From Heteronotia binoei (Eukaryota), in assembly GCF_032191835.1 (NCBI RefSeq), contig NC_083223.1, forward strand, positions 20,894,001 through 20,958,000: DNA of 64,000 nucleotides. The letters are read 5' to 3'. The notes beneath the pieces were generated by a model. It saw only the letters and a program-made list of their open reading frames with translations. It was not told where the DNA came from and did not search any database. Numbering within the stretch: position 1 is the first letter of the stretch; every line of letters starts with the position of its first letter. Shown piece after piece: positions 12,362 to 63,997 of the stretch. The translations under genes and the position numbers were made by a program.

Positions 12362-12528
12362 NNNNNNNNNNNNNNNNNNNNNNNNNNNNNNNNNNNNNNN
12401 NNNNNNNNNNNNNNNNNNNNNNNNNNNNNNNNNNNNNNNNNNNNNNNNNNNNNNNNNNNNNNNNNNNNNNNNNNNNNNNNNNNNNNNNNNNNNNNNNNNN
12501 NNNNNNNNNNNNNNNNNNNNNNNNNNNN
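12362..12528. other. Assembly gap (167 N)
   Basis: Run of N. Confidence 1.
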
Positions 12529-16891: not shown

Positions 16892-17167
16892 AGAGCCAGT
16901 TTGGTGTAGCGGTTAAGTGTGCGGACTCTTATCTGGGAGAACCGGGTTTGATTCCCCGCTCCTCCACTTGCACCTGCTAGCATGGCCTTGGGTCAGCCAT
17001 AGCTCTGGCAGAGGTTGTCCTTGAAAGGGCAGCTGCTGTGAGAGCCTTCTCCAGCCCCACCCACCTCACAGGGTGTCTGTTGTGGGGGAGGAAGGTAAAG
17101 GAGATTGTGAGCCACTCTGAGACTCTTCGGAGTGGAGGGCGGGATATAAATCCAATATCTTCATCTA
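16892..17167 (+). mobile_element. Squam3-like SINE, preceded by a truncated 5S-SINE head (about 16830-16890)
   Basis: Full head to tail; its 3' end seeds the following array. Confidence 0.85.
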
Positions 17168-17895
17168 CTTCACAGGGTGTCTGTTGTGGGGGAGGAAGGG
17201 AAAGGAGATTGTGAGCCGCTCTGAGACTCTTCGGGGTGGAGGGCGGGATATAAATCCAATATCTTCATCTACCTCACAGGGTGTCTGTTGTGGGGGAGGA
17301 AGGGAAAGGAGATTGTGAGCCGCTCTGAGACTCTTCGGAGTGGAGGGCGGGATATAAATCCAATATCTTCATCTACCTCACAGGGTGTCTGTTGTGGGGG
17401 AGGAAGGGAAAGGAGATTGTGAGCCGCTCTGAGACTCTTCGGAGTGGAGGGCGGGATATAAATCCAATATCTTCATCTACCTCACAGGGTGTCTGTTGTG
17501 GGGGAGGAAGGGAAAGGAGATTGTGAGCCGCTCTGAGACTCTTCGGAGTGGAGGGCGGGATATAAATCCAATATCTTCATCTACCTCACAGGGTATCTGT
17601 TGTGGGGGAGGAAGGGAAAGGAGATTGTGAGCCGCTCTGAGACTCTTCGGAGTGGAGGGCGGGATATAAATCCAATATCTTCATCTACCTCACAGGGTGT
17701 CTGTTGTGGGGGAGGAAGGTAAAGGAGATTGTGAGCCGCTCTGAGACTCTTCGGAGTGGAGGGCGGGATATAAATCCAATATCTTCATCTACCTCACAGG
17801 GTGTCTGTTGTGGGGGAGGAAGGGAAAGGAGATTGTGAGCCGCTCTGAGACTCTTTGGAGTGGAGGGCGGGATATAAATCCAATATCTTCAATAT
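17064..17895 (+). repeat. Tandem array, 8 x 104 bp, made from the SINE 3' end
   Basis: Unit starts (cctcacaggg) at 17064, 17168, 17272, 17376, 17480, 17584, 17688 and 17792. Confidence 0.95.
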
Positions 17896-18378
17896 CTTCA
17901 TCTTCTATTTGGATAGGAAACCAGCAGAACAGGGTTGCTATGCAGAGGCAGGCGGTGGCAAACCACCCGTGAATGTCTCTTGCCTTGAAAATCCTGTGGG
18001 GGTCACCATGAGTCAGCTCTCGCTTAGCGCAAAAAAGAAGCCCATCGGTGTCTTCCCAGCTTTCCTAAACCCTGGATTGCTGTGGATTCCAGCTATGTGG
18101 TGGAAGAGATTAGAAGTTAAGAGCTATTTCTGTGCAGATGTCTCACAAGGAAATAAGTTGCAGAGATCTTTGTAAAAGCCAGGAATAAAAGGGATTACTG
18201 ATTTAGGCTTACGCTAAAAATTGCAGTGAAATGTGCTTATCAAAATGTGTATTAAGTGATACAGCATGAGAAAACGTCGGCCTTGTTAGAAAGGAGAAGG
18301 CCTGGAAAAACTGGGAGAGAGAACCCATTTTTTGATCGAGGGAGGCAGGTTTTATTAAATACTTGCTCTTTTAAAATA

Positions 18379-28552: not shown

Positions 28553-28813
28553 TTTGAAGAAGATGACCGCAGATTTATACCCTGCCCTTCTCTCTGAATC
28601 AGAGACTCAGAGCAGCTTACAATCTCCCATATCTTCTCCCCCCACAACAGACACCCTGTGAGGTGGATGGGGCTGAGAGGGCTCTCACAGCAGCTGCCCT
28701 TTCAAGGACAACCTCTGCCAGAGCTATGGCTGACCCAAGGCCATTCCAGCAGGTGCAGGTGGAGGAGTGGGGAATCAAACCTGGTTCTCCCAGATAAGAG
28801 TCCGCGCACTTAA
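28553..28813 (-). mobile_element. Squam3-like SINE
   Basis: Homologous to 797-1076. Confidence 0.85.
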
Positions 28814-28945
28814 CCACTACAGCGAACTGGCTCTCCTTGTAGCTAGTTAATGTGGCTATCTCTAGAAGTCTTATGTCATCTAGCAGTCTATTGATAGTGC
28901 TCTTCAACAAATTGCATTGCATTTATTAATAAGCATCTTATACAG

Positions 28946-41859: not shown

Positions 41860-42321
41860 CAGCGGTCCCCAACCTTTTTGGCATCAGGGACCGGTTTTGT
41901 GAAAGACATATTTTCCAAGGAGGGGGAGGGGTATGGTTTCAGGATGACACAATTGTGCACTTTATTTCTAAAGTGTTTGGTGCAGTGGTTAAGTGCGGGG
42001 ACTCTTGTCTGGGAGAACGGGGTTTGATTCCCCACTCCTCTACTTGCACCTGCTAGCATGGCCTTGGGTCAGCCATAGCATCTCATAGAGATGTCCTTGT
42101 AAGGGCAGCTGCTGTGAGAGCCCTCTCCAGCCCCACCCACCTCACAGGGTGTCTGTTTTGGGGGAGGAAGGTAAAGGTGACTGTGAGCCGCTCTGAGACT
42201 CTTCAGAGTGGAGGGCAGGATATAAATCCAATGTCGTCATCATCTTATTATTATTACTACGCTGTAATATACAATGAAATAATTATACAACTCATGGCCC
42301 AGTTGCTAACAGGCCATGGAC
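41860..42321. mobile_element. hAT-Charlie (MER1/Charlie3-like) non-autonomous element, interrupted by a Squam3-like SINE (about 41971-42245)
   Basis: Starts cagcggtccccaacctttttggcatcagggaccgg and resumes tattattac...aatgaaataattatacaactca. Flanks ccttacaa / ccttgcaa. Family assignment is from memory. Confidence 0.6.
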
Positions 42322-43153: not shown

Positions 43154-43645
<492 letters not shown>

Positions 43646-43793
43646 GAAGGATGTCAGGAAGCCAAAGGACCTCGGCGTCAATCCACTGAATGACCCCAGA
43701 CATTTACAATACAGATCCTTGTGCAAAGATTTTGCTAACCCCCCCACTGCCCTGCATCCTGCTGTTCCCGAGCAAAACTCCAAACCCTCCTCC

Positions 43794-50702: not shown

Positions 50703-51127
50703 CTCGTGTGTTAGAAGATGAAGAAGACTGCAGATTTATACCCCACCTTTCTCTCTGAACCAGAGACTCAGAGTGGCTTACAATCTCCTATATCTTCTCG
50801 CCACACAACAGACACCTTGTAAGGTGGGTGGGGCTGAGAGGGCTCTCACAGCAGCTGTCCCTTCAAGGACAATTCCTGAGAGAGCTATGGCTGACCCAAG
50901 GCCATTCCAGCAGCTGCATGTGGAGGAGTGGGGAATCAAACCTGGTTCTCCCAGATAAGAGGCCACACACTTAACCACTATACCAAACTGGCTCCAGTCA
51001 GCCGTGTCATTAGAAAAACACAACCAAGCAATCAAGGGCTACGCCATGTCCAGCTTTCCGAGGCAGTTTACACACCCATAAACTTTAATAATACCAGCAG
51101 GTCTTTTGAGCAGCAAGCATCTTTTCA

Positions 51128-56200: not shown

Positions 56201-56699
56201 AGAGGCCTCAGGAAATAGATAAATCACATTTTGCATTTAGGGAGCAATAACAGATTCCTATATTATCACATTCATGCACTGCTACGCTAAACAAACAGTG
56301 AAAAACATGTCTGACATCCAGGTGTTAAACTCAGGACATCACGGATCTGGATTCTTATGGTGCTGCGCATTATCTGGAACTAATTCCTGCACAGCCATGA
56401 AGACAAGGGAGCCAGTGTGGTTTAGTGGACAGAGTGGTGGACTAGGACTTTAGGCAATCTGGGTTTGAATCCCCACTTCTACCATGGTCACAAATTCTCA
56501 GCCTGGTCAACCTCACAGGGTTGTTGTGGGGAAAATGGAGGAGGAAAAGAACAATGTTCTAGGCTGCTTTGAGTCCCAGCTAGAGAAAAAAGCTGGATAT
56601 AAATAAAGGCCATAAATAAAATCGAGGGCAGATGACCTCCCAGCTCCCTCCCCTGTGCTATTCTCACTCCTAGGACACTGAAAGGCAGCAGTCAGAAGA

Positions 56700-57345
56700 A
56701 GAAGAAGAAAGCGGGGGGGAGGAGATTGGATTTATACCCCTCCCTTCACTTGGAGTCTCAGAGCAATTTACAATCTCCTTCCCTTCCCCTCCCCACAACA
56801 GACACCCTGTGAGGTAGGTGGGGCTGAGAGAGCTCTGACAGAAACTGCTCTTGAGCAGAACAATTCTGGGAGAGTTATGACTGACCCAATGTCACTCCAG
56901 CAGATGCATGTGGAGGACTGGGAAATCAAACCCTGTTCTCCCAGATTAGAGTATATGCACTTAACCACTACATCAAAAGCACAACCCAAGTGCATTCTGC
57001 AAGGAGCAGACGAGAGCCACAGTAACCTCTGAATTCAGAAAGACCAAAGAAGAGAAGAAGAAGAAGAAGAAGATGAAGAAGAAGATATTGGATTTATATC
57101 CCGCCCTCCACTCCGAAGAGTCTCAGAGCGGCTCACAATCTCCTTTACCTTCCTCCCCCACAACAGACACCCTGTGAGGTGGGTGAAGCTGGAGAGGGCT
57201 CTCACAGCAGCTCCCCTTTCAAGGACAACCTCTGTGATAACTATGGCTGACCCAAGGCCATTCCAGCAGGTGCAAGTGGAGGAGTGGGGAATCAAACCCG
57301 GTTCTCCCAGATTAGAGTCCGCACACTTAACCACTACACCAAACT
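56700..57345 (-). mobile_element. Two Squam3-like SINEs (about 56700-56975 and 57050-57345)
   Basis: Both homologous to 797-1076, with (TCT)n tails. Confidence 0.85.
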
Positions 57346-58988
57346 GAGTGGATTCCATAGCATTCCTATGAAGACTGAACACTGTGTGCGTTTTCTCTTT
57401 CCCTGGCAGAGACAGGCAGCCAGCAGTACACTATGCTCCATTTCCCAGGACTGACTTTCTGATCTGAACCAGCCCTTGATTTCCTTTCTGTCCCATCCCT
57501 CCGCTAGGAGAAAGACTCACAAACACAACTGCCCAAGTGGTGCCTTCTACTGCAGAGCTCCTTTGTGAAGACAGCACATGAGTCTATTCTGCCTTCCTCC
57601 TCCACCCCACACCCAAGAAAGGGAGACAGCAGCGGAGGATTTGTGCTCTGAAGGCAACCTGTGCGGCCAGATCTCTTGTCCAGGAGGGGACCAGGTGAGA
57701 AGCAACTGCAGGTTCCACTTCCTGCTCTACAGGGCGACGGAACAGACAGTTTCAGCCAGAGGCAAGCCTTACTCGCCCCAGCAATGGACTGGAAGCAAGT
57801 CCCATAAAGAAGAATGACTATTCATCATCACTGTACAGGAAAGACAGCTAATGCTCCGAACACGTAGCACGGCTCTCCTGCATCCTTGGGATGCTTAGTA
57901 TCATGTATGCCCCATGCATTATTTGACAACACACAGAGCTGCATTCTACATGCAAGCATAATGAGAACTGCTAATCTTATCAGACTGACATTTGTCATTC
58001 TTTCAGTAGCCACTATTGAAATGTGTGCTATCGCAGCAACATTGCACCGAGGGGACAACAGTCTTGACTATTAGGACAAAACACCCAAGGTAAAGCTATT
58101 TATAGTAACCGATGTCCCCTAAACATCCTTAAAATGGCTCAAAGCTCTAGCACATGTCTCCTGAGTGCAAGTTTTGGTGTTCTTAGCAAGATTCGTTTAT
58201 ATTAAACATCATGTAGATGTGAGAATACAGGTGAGCCCTGAAGTATACGCAGGATCGAAGGGGAGACCTCTCTCTTGCTGACATTTTTAATAGTGTAGTG
58301 TACAGTTAAAGCAAATCCAGCACTCATCCAAATAAACTGGATTTCTGTTCCAACCAATGTTTATTGGAAATCCTGGAATTTAGTTTGCATTATATTGGAA
58401 CAATAACTGCTATGAACAGAGACATTTCCTTTGCTGATGGAGCTACCAGTTACAGGGAACAAATCGTGATACTCAGTGGTTATATAATTATCTACAGCTT
58501 TTGGAGGATTCAGATCTATAAAGAGATCAGTAGGATTAGACAGAAAGCCAGATAATTACTATTATTATGTGAACTCCATCCCTCCCCAGGACAGTTAAAA
58601 ACTACTGAATAAAAATTTTATTCTCCCTTATCTCTGGTACAAGACACTGTGGGATGAATTACTGACGGAGGTATTTTAGTTAAGGTATATAAAAGGTTAA
58701 TCCCCCCCCTTAGAAATGTTTAACAAAATTACTTAGAAAAAATATTAGGCACTGTGGTCTATACTGCTGCGTATAGCTTGTGGAAACTAGGAACCCACTA
58801 TGGAATTCTGCATCATTTTAGTTCTGCTTTGAGACTTCTGATTGGTTTTACAACCTTAATTCTATTGCATTGTCTACTGAATGTCCCATCGTGTAAGCTG
58901 CCTGGAGTCCATGTGAGAAAGGCGGACTATAAACAACCTAAGCAGAATAAATAGATTTTGTATACTTCTTCAAAATATTGATGCTTAC

Positions 58989-59179
58989 GCACTGACTTGG
59001 ATAGCCCAGGCAAGCCCAATCTCGTCAAATCTTGGAAGCTAAGCAGGATCAACTCTGGCAAGTACTTCTGCGGGAAACCTCCTTGGAATACAAGGAATTG
59101 GGGACAGGCTTTATTCAGCCACCTCCCTGAATATCCCCCAGTAGGGGTCAGTCACCAGAGGTCGCCATGACTTCCAGAT
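58989..59179 (+). mobile_element. 5S rRNA-derived SINE whose tail is replaced by the DIRS end
   Basis: 5S head tctcgtcaaatcttggaagctaagcagg; body as in 11867-12085; ends ccatgacttccagat. Confidence 0.8.
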
Positions 59180-59667
59180 CGACCCTTGGCACTTACCGTG
59201 AGGGGTCCTTCTCCTAAGAGGACAGGAGGACATCTTGGGTGTTTTCCCACCGTCCAATCAGGGAGGCAGGAATCTAAAAGATCTTCCCCTTCCTGTGGCT
59301 GTGGGAACCACCCTTCAGTTCGGGTGACTCCGAGAAGCAGTACAAAAAACCTATATCTAGTAAAAAAAAGGAACTTCTCATGCAAACAGATAACGGTACG
59401 TCAGGTACAACTGCCTAAACGCGGCAGATTGAAATTCAAGGTAAACCCTAAAAAAGGAACGTAAGAGAGAAAAAACAGGCCCATGACAATGGACATAATT
59501 AGTAGAAAGTACCAGCAACAGGTGTAGAATAAAGGAGTAGGAACAGGCTGCCCAAGGTAGGGCGATAGATGGGAGGGCAAGATGTCCTCCTGTCCTCTTA
59601 GGAGAAGGACCCCTCACGGTAAGTGCCAAGGGTCGTTCTCCCTAAGAGGCGGAGGACATCTTGGGTG
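59180..59667 (-). repeat. DIRS right terminus: rE 59180-59208, right ITR from 59209, ICR about 59607-59667
   Basis: 59180-59237 is the exact reverse complement of 59578-59635 (58 bp); 59636-59667 repeats 59209-59241 imperfectly. Confidence 0.85.
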
Positions 59668-59704: not shown

Positions 59705-60793
59705 CTACTCGGGCAGGACGTGTTGAAGGATTCGCCTGCCGAAGGCGGCGTCTGCTGATGCGTAGCCATTCAGTTTATAGTGCCGGATAAAGGTGGATAT
59801 TGAAGACCACGTAGCTGCCTTGCACACCTCCTCGACAGAGGCGTTCTTATTGAAGGCCGCGTTGGCCGCTGAACTCCTGGTCGAATGTGCCGTGATTCCT
59901 TGTGGAACTTTGAGGTGCAACGCCTTGTATGCCTCCGTTATGCACTGCTTGATTGCATAACTGATGGCAGACTTGGACATCTTCTGTCCCATTCTGGGTT
60001 CTGCCACATTGACAAACATGGCGTCAGATTTACGAAATGTCTCAGTCCTAATCAAGTAGATCTTGAGTGCCCTGCGCACGTCCAAGGTATGCCACGTGCG
60101 CTCCTTCGGGTGCTTGGGATCTGGACAAAACGATGGTAGGTTGATCTCCTGGCTCTGGTGGAATCTAGAGGAAATCTTCGGGCGGAAAGTGGGATCCGGG
60201 TACAGAACGACCTTGTCCTTATGAAATACGCAAAGCTCCTTCCTGACCGACAGCGCACCGATTTCCGAGATCCTCCTGGCCGAGGTTATTGCCACCAGGA
60301 AAATCGTCTTCATGCGCATTATCCTTAATGGTACGGACATTAATGGTTCGAAGGGTGGATTGGTTAGAGCCGAGAGCACCGTGTTCAGTCGCCAAGTTGG
60401 AAAGCGATGCGTTTGTGGTGGAGAGCTCAAGGAAGCCCCTCTAAGGAACCGCCGAAGGTGTGGATGGGATGACAGATGTACGCCGTCTACCTGCTGGAGA
60501 ACTGATGCCAGGGCCGCGACCTGTCGTCTGAGAGTAGCAGGTTTCAGTCCGGATCGGAGGCCGTCTTGAAGAAATTGTAGGATCCTAGGGATCGTAGGCT
60601 GTAGCGGGTCCACCTGTTTTCTCCTACACCACCTGTGGAAGGCCTTCCAAGACGCGTTATAGATCCGTGTAGTGGATTCTCTTCTGGAAGCTAGAATTGT
60701 ATTGGTCACATCACTAGAATAGCCTAGGTCTAGTAGTGATCTCCTCTCAACCTCCACGCGGTCAGACTCAGCCATTCGGGATGGGGGTGCCAT
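59705..60793 (-). CDS. DIRS tyrosine recombinase domain, intact
   Basis: Catalytic set TSARRISEI (R), AHSTRS (HxxR), ATWSS (W) and FIRHY (Y); preceded by a core-binding domain TTRIYNASWKAFHRWC. Confidence 0.95.
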   Translation of the reverse strand: MAPPSRMAESDRVEVERRSLLDLGYSSDVTNTILASRRESTTRIYNASWKAFHRWCRRKQVDPLQPTIPRILQFLQDGLRSGLKPATLRRQVAALASVLQQVDGVHLSSHPHLRRFLRGASLSSPPQTHRFPTWRLNTVLSALTNPPFEPLMSVPLRIMRMKTIFLVAITSARRISEIGALSVRKELCVFHKDKVVLYPDPTFRPKISSRFHQSQEINLPSFCPDPKHPKERTWHTLDVRRALKIYLIRTETFRKSDAMFVNVAEPRMGQKMSKSAISYAIKQCITEAYKALHLKVPQGITAHSTRSSAANAAFNKNASVEEVCKAATWSSISTFIRHYKLNGYASADAAFGRRILQHVLPE

Positions 60794-62804
60794 ACTGGTC
60801 CCTGCAATAGCATGTCTGGTTGAACTGGTAGGTGGAGAGGTTCTTCTACCGACATCTGCTGAATTGAAGAAAACCAAGGACGACGAGGCCACCAGGGTGC
60901 AACTAGTATGACCTCGGCCCCCAGCCGGCTGATCTTCCTGAGCAACTTGGGAATGACCGGTATCGGGGGAAAGGCGTATAGGAGATCCTGCGGCCATGGA
61001 GATGTTAAGGCGTCTGTGGCCTCCGCCCGACTGTGGTAGTACCTCGTGAAGAACCGAGGGAGCTGGTGATTCTGGTGAGACGCAAAGAGATCCAGTGAAG
61101 GTGGGCCAAAATGGTTCACTATCTTCAGAAACAAGGCCCTGCTTGAATGCTCTCCCGACTGAGCCAGTCTGCTTGGACATTGCAGGCCCCCTTGATGTGC
61201 TCCGCTCTTATTGATTTTAAATGGAGTTCCGCCCATTCGAATAACTTCGCAGCCTCCTTGTAAAGGGAACTGGACCTGGACCCCCCTTGATTGTTTAAGT
61301 AGGCTTTCGCCGCTATATTGTCCGTTCGCACTAGCACGTGCTGTCCCGATACCTGGACCTGAAAGTAGAGTAGTGCCAATCGTATGGCCCGGAGCTCCAG
61401 AAGGTTGATTGGAAGAGTCGACTCCTTGGCTGACCACAGACCCTGTGTGGGAACCTCGTTGAGAGTAGCCCCCCAACCTGAGAGGCTGGCGTCTGAGAAC
61501 AGTTGTAGTTCTCTCTCTGCGGCGTAGACTCTTCCCTGCCGAAGGTTGGTGGTCTTGGTCCACCACAGAAGACTCTCCTTGACCTTCATCGGTACCGTCA
61601 GTGAGATGGCACATCTCTCCATGATGCGGAGTTGATAGGGTCGTAGAAACATTTGCAACTGTCTGGTGTGATGGCGACCCCACTGTAATGCCTCGAGATT
61701 CGAGATCAGGAGACCCATGAGCCTTGCTAGTGTCAGGAGCGTTGATGATGACCCCTGAATCACCTGCTGTACCAGTGTCTTGGTCTTTGAGATCTTGTCC
61801 TCCGGAAGGAATATGGAGTTCAAGTTGGTGTCGATTATCATGCCCAGATGTTCCAGTTTCTGGGTCGGATGTAACTGGCTTTTGGATAGGTTTATTAAGA
61901 ACCCGTGCTGTTGCAGGCAATTGACAGTGCGCTGGACGTCCAATTCCGCTTCCCTCCTCGACGAAGATCTTATCAACAGGTCGTCGAGATAGGGGTGCAC
62001 GTGGATTCCCCTCTGTCTGAGGTGTGCTATCGGATTCACCAGGACCTTGGTGAACACCCGCGGTGCCGTCGCCAGGCTGAATGGAAGGGCCCTGAATTGG
62101 TAGTGCGATCTGTTCACGCAAAAACGAAGAAATCTGCGATGCGCGGGTAGGATCGGAATGTGCAAATAAGCCTCCGTTAGATCCAGTGATGCCATGTAAT
62201 CTTGGTGATGTAGGGCTTCTGTAATGGACCTGATGGACTCCATTCTGAAGTGTCGAAGTTTGATGTTCTTGTTCAGGAATTTTAAGTCCAGGATCGCCCT
62301 CCAGTCCCCGTTCCTTTTGGGCACTGTGAAGAAGATCGAATAGACACCTTGACATCTCTGGTTCAAGGGAACTTGTTCTATAGCTGCGATCTCTAGGAGG
62401 TGGTCTATAGCCCTGAGGGTAACATTCCTCCGACCCGGGTTCGAGCGAAGAGGAGAAACGATAAAGCGGTCTGGGGGTGAGCGCTTGAATTCTATCGGGT
62501 AGCCCCGAGTAACAATGTCCAGAGTCCATGAGTCCGCCCGTGACTCCCTCCAGGCTTGATGGAAGTGAAGCAGGCGGCCCCCTACTGGGATGAGATCCCA
62601 GTCATGCCTTACTGGGCTTGGGGCCCTTCTCAAACTTGTCCGATCGGTTGGGCTGGTTCCTCTGGAATCGGGGGTTGGAGAAGTTCTTGCGGAAAGTTTG
62701 TTTGGATTGACTCCAGGATTGTCTTCTGTATTCTTGTTTAGGCTTGGAGAAGTTGGCTGTGTTACGAAAGGAACTAGAACCGAACCCCCGTGTGTCGGGG
62801 CGTC
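60730..62804 (-). pseudogene. DIRS Pol (RT-RNaseH-DNA adenine MTase), frameshifted at about 61137
   Basis: RT motifs LDLTEAYLHIP, LPFSL and YLDD. RNaseH motifs FSDAS, INLLELRAI, TDN and ADWLSR. MTase motifs DLFAS, YAFPP and LVAPWWP follow in the next frame. Confidence 0.92.
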
Positions 62805-63997
62805 TCAGAAACTTTGGCATTGCTTTCTTCTTGTCTCGCGTCTCCACCAGGATCTTCTCCAGTGAGTCCCCGAATAGCTTCTCTCCTTGAAAGGGATAGC
62901 CTGACACGATGGATTTTGAGTGATTGTCGGCTGGCCACGCTCTCAGCCATAAGCCCCTTCTCGCGACGGTGTTAGCTGCCATCGCCCTGGCTGAGAACGA
63001 AAGGGAGTCCAGTGAGGCGTCCGCTGAGAACTCTGCTGCCCGCATGAGTCTGCTGGTGCCCTCCAGAATCCTCTTATCCGTGTCTGGTACGAGTTGTGCT
63101 AAGCGTCTGACCCACACTATTGCTGCTCTAGCCACAATAGAAGTAGCAGTAGTTGCCTTGATGGCTCCTCCTCAAGGCCAGGTCGATTTTCCTGTCCCAA
63201 CTGTCGCGGACTGAACCCTGACCGTCCTCAGCTAGCAACCCCTGGGACTGTAGGGCTGCCACGGGAGCATTGACCAGGGGAACCTGTAACATATCGTTAG
63301 CAAAAGAGGGAAGCTCATACAATTTTTTGACAGAATTGGGAACCTGCTTGCTGACACTTGGTTTGGCCCATTCAGCTTTTAAATGACGTTCAAAGAACTC
63401 TGGGAAGGGGAAGACGTTGTCCGAAGCACGGTGCCTTGGGAAGAACTCTGCGTTTCCCTTGGGCTTATTTTTGGGGTTAGTCAGGGAACTTGTAGTTTCC
63501 TGTTCCTCAGGTGACCCCTGAAGGTCCAGTGCAGCTAGCACTTTGGGAAGAAGAGATTGAAACTCCTCTGGTTTGAAAAGGCGTGAGGAGGGTTCTGGCA
63601 CAGTAGTGCTCTCTATTTCTTCATCTGAGAGGAATTCACCCTCCTCCCGTTCTTCCCCATAAGACTCCTCCGATAGAGCTTCATATGGGAGCCTCTCACC
63701 CTCCTGGAAATCACTGGCTGAGGGACCCCTTGGAGCCTTAGAATGCCCCCTGGATCTCTTGGGAGATGGGGATCTGGAGGAGGAAGCATGGCTAGGGGAC
63801 CTTGGTCTCTTGTGGGTGGCTGCCATAACTGCCGCACCCACGGTCTGTTTTATGGAGTCTAAAAATTCTGCAAACAAAGAGGGCCCCATGGTGGGTACGT
63901 TACCAGAGCCCCTCTGGGGCTGGTAGGTCTGCGGAGCTTCCTGAGTTGGCTGGTCACTGAAGGCGCTGGGGTCTCCCGCCTGGAGATTGGCATCCAT
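62602..63997 (-). pseudogene. DIRS Gag-like ORF1, frameshifted at about 63162
   Basis: ORFs 63128-63997 and 62602-63135 join through AIKATTATSIVARAAIVW; basic C-terminal tail; position upstream of Pol. Confidence 0.8.

Follow-up and report, generated by a model that had tools for sequence, protein, structure and literature searches.

A single weak-type stop codon separates gag from the recombinase frame in a damaged DIRS1-like retrotransposon and most of its scorable relatives, suggesting recombinase synthesis by readthrough

How DIRS elements translate their three overlapping ORFs has been an open question since 1985, and the element studied here raises it in a concrete form: can the recombinase be reached from gag by readthrough of a single stop codon? 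The window analyzed is a 64,000-nt stretch of Heteronotia binoei DNA (contig NC_083223.1, positions 20,894,001 to 20,958,000, assembly GCF_032191835.1), which holds on its minus strand the 3' 4.8 kb of a DIRS1-like tyrosine-recombinase (YR) retrotransposon, a young but broken copy. The initial annotation noted that ORF1 (Gag) ends at a UGA, that the same frame continues for 24 open codons to an AUG opening a long third frame, and that the stop is followed by a 7-bp hairpin and a second possible stem. From this it inferred that readthrough gives Gag-YR, such that one mRNA could yield Gag, Gag-Pol and Gag-YR by two recoding events. The features of the locus are listed below, with frames named by the first-base coordinate modulo 3.

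63131-63997, minus strand: N-terminal piece of gag (frame 1), a 289-aa ORF; the 5' end of the element lies beyond the window.
62605-63135, minus strand: C-terminal piece of gag (frame 0), a 177-aa ORF; the frame changes relative to the N-terminal piece between about 63157 and 63087.
62602-62604, minus strand: gag stop codon UGA in the context GCA UGA CUG, the proposed readthrough site.
62530-62601, minus strand: 24 open codons between the stop and the first AUG of the same frame, overlapping the start of pol homology in the +1 frame.
62527-62529, minus strand: first AUG of the gag/YR frame after the stop.
62585-62601, minus strand: 7-bp hairpin directly after the stop, CTGGGAT (62601-62595), CTC, ATCCCAG (62591-62585); an eighth pair (62602/62584) involves the A of the UGA.
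62530-62580, minus strand: second stem-loop, with outer arms at 62580-62571 and 62540-62530.
61128-62804, minus strand: pol frame (frame 2, +1 relative to the gag end) encoding RT and RNase H, open for 200 nt upstream of the gag stop.
60733-62601, minus strand: stop-free run of the gag frame (frame 0) laid over pol, 623 codons, the last ~140 of which encode the MT-like pol tail in this copy because of the frame change.
61134-61146, minus strand: zone where this copy changes frame; upstream, pol is in frame 2 and the YR frame is frame 0, downstream, pol (MT-like) is in frame 0 and the YR frame is frame 1.
60733-61152, minus strand: MT-like C-terminal domain of pol.
59708-61180, minus strand: tyrosine recombinase ORF (frame 1), with the catalytic domain at about 60319-59777.
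59176-59639, no strand assigned: 3' repeat region, with 62-nt inverted copies at 59176-59237 and 59578-59639.

The sequence bears out what was observed at this site. It reads AAG GCA TGA with the stop at 62604-62602, and frame 0, open from 63171 to this stop, then has no further stop until 60732, while frame 1 contains 32 stops over the same stretch. The ATG at 62529 opens a 599-aa ORF, and both stems appear in the predicted minimum-energy fold, the second one also in the centroid fold.

The identity of the element was established by Pfam profile searches of the ORFs. LAP2alpha matches both gag pieces (profile positions 26-115 in the N-terminal piece and 149-229 in the C-terminal piece, the latter with E 1.2e-9), RVT_1 (E 7e-20) and RT_RNaseH match the ORF at 62633-61128, and Phage_integrase (E 1.8e-8, residues 288-468) matches the ORF at 61180-59708, a tyrosine recombinase instead of a DDE integrase; no integrase or protease family was hit in any ORF. 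A LAP2alpha-like gag and three overlapping ORFs are known from Xenopus families (PMC9210276). The nearest proteins are DIRS-like pols from snakes, lizards and frogs at no more than 50% identity. The MT-like tail has no Pfam hit itself, but tblastn finds it contiguous with RT/RNase H (RH) in relatives at 42-52% identity. Near the 3' end, self-BLAST detected the 62-nt inverted pair at 98% identity and no other copy of the element in the window, and family contigs stop matching at about 59176-59177; the 5' terminus lies outside the window.

The copy is damaged in two places. The LAP2alpha profile is split between two frames of gag, while in the related locus L001 the same domain is contiguous in one frame. 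RT/RH and the MT-like tail are also in different frames here but in one frame in the related loci L001 and L002. The second change moves the recombinase from the gag frame to frame 1, which is why the long third frame does not itself contain the catalytic domain in this copy. The window copy therefore cannot make a Gag-YR fusion, and gag and the recombinase are in one frame only in relatives.

To test whether the layout is conserved, as the initial annotation had proposed, we collected four Logan contigs of three related elements, a lizard locus, a frog locus and 80 metagenome contigs encoding a related pol at 33-41% identity. In the clade of the window copy, L001 has one stop (TGA) in the gag/YR frame over 3.9 kb, L002 has one stop in its whole 3.2-kb contig, the lizard copy L003 has the same TGA plus later decay, and the frog locus L088 has gag, TGA and 975 open codons ending after the recombinase domain, all in one frame. 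In nearly all loci the recombinase domain lies in the frame one behind pol, designated Y. Altogether 79 loci could be scored, of which 53 (49 clusters below 80% nucleotide identity in RT, hereafter lineages) have a long upstream ORF in Y, a single stop 19-229 nt before the pol GGRL motif and an open run of about 975-1030 codons into the recombinase. Of the remaining loci, four are cut by the contig end, eight have a broken Y frame and 14 differ. On a pol tree the architecture is spread everywhere. Most deviating loci are singletons nested among ordinary ones, so many may be damaged copies, although one small clade (L065, L068, L070 and L072) looks genuinely different. At least two loci (L061 and L065) lack the open run, so the recombinase can be expressed in another way.

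The open frame is far beyond chance. When each pol protein was kept and its synonymous codons were shuffled, 760 Y-frame stops were predicted over RT/RH in 46 loci, and none is seen apart from the gag stop; in contrast, the third frame has 1492 stops against 1367 expected. For the window copy alone 16.6 stops are expected over RT/RH and none is observed. It is thus very unlikely that this is merely a dead copy with chance open frames, even though its two frame changes and the unremarkable folding of its hairpins would fit such a view; the recurrence in 49 lineages contradicts it. The peptide of the overprinted region, on the other hand, is not constrained. Identity at fourfold sites of pol codons, which are first positions of Y codons, is 0.288 in the overlapped pol and 0.288 in the non-overlapped recombinase domain, and the closest pairs agree. 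The few within-family variants shown by reads also fall mostly on pol third positions (10 of the 15 listed between 61317 and 62175). A word-based protein search with the 599-aa translation found nothing at E <= 0.001, which is weak evidence as the query is of low complexity and the MT-like part lies beyond the words used. The run is therefore kept free of stops but is otherwise free to vary, behaving as a conduit rather than as a protein domain.

We next considered how ribosomes may enter this frame. One possibility is that it is entered independently of gag termination, by reinitiation, an internal entry site, or a spliced or subgenomic RNA starting translation near the gag end, for example at AUG 62529, the frame shared with gag being inherited history. 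The window copy, L002 and L088 indeed have an AUG 16-29 codons after the stop, AUGs are somewhat enriched in the first 54 codons (29 of 49 lineages against about 19 expected), and, with pol taking one frame, gag and YR share a frame half the time by chance. However, no AUG is conserved. The first AUG lies 7-542 codons after the stop (median 39), and in 15 lineages it lies 122-542 codons downstream, yet the frame is open from the stop onward. In total 5447 codons lie between the stop and the first AUG without a single stop, where about 186 would be expected. The mild excess of early AUGs falls on conserved pol tryptophans; the AUG at 62529 consists of the last base of a Ser codon (A) plus the TG of the nearly invariant pol Trp36 codon; it is a by-product of this conserved codon, and a meaning for it is not supported. 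Independent entry also does not explain the UGA-C bias or the absence of UAA at the gag stop, and we regard it as unlikely.

The gag stop is TGA in 41, TAG in eight and TAA in none of the 49 lineages, and TGA-C occurs in 28. The next codons after the 41 UGA stops include CTA (6), CTG (5), CTC (3), CAA (3) and CGG (2). In contrast, the pol and recombinase stops of the same loci are TGA 21, TAG 36 and TAA 17, with TGA-C in only three (Fisher tests, 2e-11 for TGA-C and 9e-5 for TAA). C after TGA is twice as frequent as GAC is among GAN codons of pol (binomial, 5e-6), and the stop sits at more than 20 different distances from the pol motif, so this is not one conserved Asp codon. These tests treat lineages as independent, which they are not; on the tree the stop type changes only six times and TGA-C against other contexts nine times. 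UGA-CUA and UGA-CGG are the classical type II readthrough contexts, while UAG-G is type III (PMC3159437). The window copy carries UGA-CUG, of which only the C at +4 fits the type II contexts and which is not one of the tested motifs.

The RNA structures suggested as helpers of readthrough are not supported. In the window copy, the 111 nt from the stop fold with z = -1.06, with 29 of 200 shuffles as good, and the 150 nt from +7 fold with z = +0.22. The first hairpin includes the A of the UGA and would be melted when the stop is in the A site, whereas known stimulators start 7-8 nt downstream (PMC3159437); both stems start inside the space covered by the ribosome. Both are absent in the six nearest relatives, and the seven members of the group of the window copy give no consensus pairs. 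Across the 49 lineages, 90-nt windows after the stop showed no excess structure, while 150-nt windows fold somewhat better than control windows (mean z of -1.9 to -2.1 against -0.6 to -1.3; paired Wilcoxon p of 0.0007 against one control window). We treat this as a weak hint of extended structures in some lineages.

A further alternative is that the weak UGA-C exists mainly as the pause site for a +1 frameshift into pol, as in antizyme UCC-UGA or RF2 CUU-UGA-C, with negligible readthrough and the open frame used in some other way. Pol is +1 to gag and its homology begins at the stop, GAC (Asp) being the first +1 codon in the window copy, L001, L002 and L003. Some lineages have shift-prone codons before the stop (TCC in four, CCC in three, GTT in two and TTT in one). 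The pol frame is open for a median of 278 nt upstream of the stop, and openness over 200-500 nt was at first taken as proof of an upstream shift (Fisher p 1e-35). This reading was rejected, since a null that keeps the gag protein showed that the hydrophilic gag tail explains most of it: codons with T at the second position (hydrophobic residues) make up 9.8% of the tail against 24% of the rest of gag, and the median probability of no +1 stops is 0.29. Entry into pol could therefore be at the stop or upstream, and the UGA-C bias could also serve a +1 shift at the stop. However, the commonest codon before the stop is CAA (12 of 49) and the window copy has GCA, neither of which is shift-prone, and a frameshift into pol does not explain why the gag frame stays stop-free for 1000 codons into the recombinase. 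The two events are compatible, and only the form without readthrough, which appears unlikely, is a true alternative.

Transcript data neither support nor refute translation. Two metatranscriptome contig sets contain 130-350-nt fragments of the family at 90-99% identity, and the element body is nearly silent in two RNA-seq read sets. At this thin coverage, no variant at 62602-62604 was found in the part of the variants examined, and no joint skipping the stop was seen in contigs or reads.

The initial interpretation is thus partly supported: its core, a single frame for gag and YR with one leaky-type stop, so that Gag-YR could arise by readthrough beside a second recoding event for pol, is strongly backed by comparison, whereas its structural details and its AUG are not. 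In the explanation that we consider somewhat more likely than not, intact members of this kind have a gag ending at a weak stop, usually UGA followed by C, and a pol (RT/RNase H/MT) in the +1 frame, while the gag frame runs on without a stop for about 1000 codons, first over the whole of pol and then into the recombinase domain. Most ribosomes would stop at the UGA and give Gag, a minority would read through and give Gag-spacer-recombinase, and another minority would enter the +1 frame at or before the stop and give Gag-Pol. The 24 codons and the AUG at 62529 would simply be the start of the spacer, and the local hairpins probably play no part. The comparisons demonstrate the architecture and the breadth of its conservation, selection against stops but not on the peptide of the spacer, the lack of a conserved AUG, the bias to UGA-C and the absence of UAA. 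That readthrough actually happens, how efficient it is and that a fusion product is translated are inferred from sequence alone, and a spacer of about 620 unconstrained residues is an odd thing to translate.

The domain set of gag, RT/RNase H/MT and YR and the long pol/YR overlap, with the catalytic domain at the non-overlapping 3' end, are already known; the overlap was reported in half of 28 elements, including Xenopus, Anolis and Tetraodon (Piednoel et al. 2011, PMC3266345), and some lineages, for example molluscs, are reported to lack it. For DIRS-1, a +1 frameshift was suggested but the mode of translation was 'not determined experimentally' (Spaller et al. 2016, PMC5006619); DIRS-1 is mobilised in Dictyostelium rrpC- or agnA- strains (PMC7192593). 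In the papers examined, no statement was found that the long ORF is in frame with gag behind a single UGA-type stop, that it lacks a conserved AUG or that only its openness is selected; searches combining DIRS with readthrough found nothing relevant, and the first 300,000 characters of a large 2016 recoding review do not mention DIRS, although an earlier statement of the idea cannot be ruled out from this incomplete survey. In gammaretroviruses (MuLV), the gag stop is likewise read through at low frequency to give a Gag fusion carrying an enzyme, by a type III signal of UAG-G plus a pseudoknot 8 nt downstream. Here the stop is UGA-C (four type A lineages do have UAG-G), no conserved structure was found for the window copy, the partner is the recombinase, reached across a spacer overprinted on pol, and pol itself needs a different event. 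Alphavirus and plant-virus type II readthrough shares UGA followed by C, and several relatives carry exactly UGA-CUA (6) or UGA-CGG (2), but these signals often include an extended 3' stem-loop, whereas no stem with a 7-8-nt spacer is supported in the window copy, and the host here is a cellular retrotransposon rather than an RNA virus. The +1 frameshift sites at a stop or slow codon (antizyme, RF2, Ty1/Ty3) resemble the pol side, where a poor terminator could pause the ribosome, but there is no conserved shift-prone codon before the stop and that mechanism concerns pol, not the in-frame recombinase.

Programmed readthrough is a known mechanism, whereas its use to reach a recombinase across an unconstrained overprinted spacer, its occurrence beside a second recoding event and its spread through a whole retrotransposon superfamily would be new. 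In the broadest reading, about as likely as not, the gag stop of most DIRS1-like retrotransposons is a recoding branch point, where termination gives Gag, a +1 shift gives Gag-Pol and readthrough gives Gag-recombinase across a spacer of about 620 codons selected only to be free of stops. This would be the first retroelement group shown to deliver its integration enzyme by readthrough beside a frameshift for pol, and would explain the long pol/YR overlap that has been described but never accounted for. A single-frame layout of gag, stop, spacer and recombinase, kept across deeply diverged lineages, gives a concrete and testable answer to how these ORFs are translated. It would also be an unusual case of an overlapping frame selected purely as a stop-free conduit rather than for its peptide, which matters for the interpretation of overlapping ORFs in general, and it further suggests that both enzymes are carried into particles as Gag fusions, in elements that lack a protease.

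The copy in the window carries two frame changes, one inside gag (63087-63157) and one between RT/RNase H and the MT-like domain (61134-61146). None of its three coding runs contains a stop codon, so it looks like a young but dead copy. [quoted passage not shown] A repeat of about 280 nt occurs many times in the window, with 79-94% identity, and part of it forms a tandem array. It is probably a SINE-like family. Its positions, and that of a run of undetermined bases, are as follows:

57064-57346, repeat of about 280 nt
795-1071, copy of this repeat
16897-17166, copy of this repeat
28555-28829, copy of this repeat
41975-42255, copy of this repeat
43379-43648, copy of this repeat
50713-50990, copy of this repeat
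56694-56977, copy of this repeat
17159-17906, tandem array of 104-nt-spaced copies of part of the repeat (matches of about 112 nt)
12362-12528, run of 167 N

In the gag C-terminal tails of 47 related loci, the last 20-170 codons are strongly depleted in codons with T at the second position, i.e. in hydrophobic residues (9.8% as compared to 24%). This depletion alone keeps the +1 (pol) frame open upstream of the stop, which is a caution for anyone placing the frameshift site by ORF overlap. On the other side of the stop, the predicted folding of the 150 nt that follow it in 49 related loci is modestly stronger than in control windows along the same elements, with a mean z of about -2 against -0.6 to -1.3, and 45% of loci are below -2. 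The window copy itself does not share this property.

The frame layout is not uniform among the related loci, which are designated here by L numbers. Fourteen of them have gag in a different frame relative to pol and the recombinase: gag is in the pol frame in L010, L023, L027, L031 and L062 and in the third frame in L033, L060, L064, L068, L070, L072, L076 and L077, whereas L066 is included in this count without assignment to either group. In these loci, with few exceptions, the frames not shared with gag open upstream of the gag stop. Most of the fourteen are singletons nested among ordinary elements and may be damaged copies. The clade comprising L065, L068, L070 and L072 may be a genuinely different layout. 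Two related elements, L061 and L065, which would be good negative controls for the readthrough model, have 40-44 stops in the frame that is stop-free elsewhere, and their recombinase must therefore be expressed without the long run.
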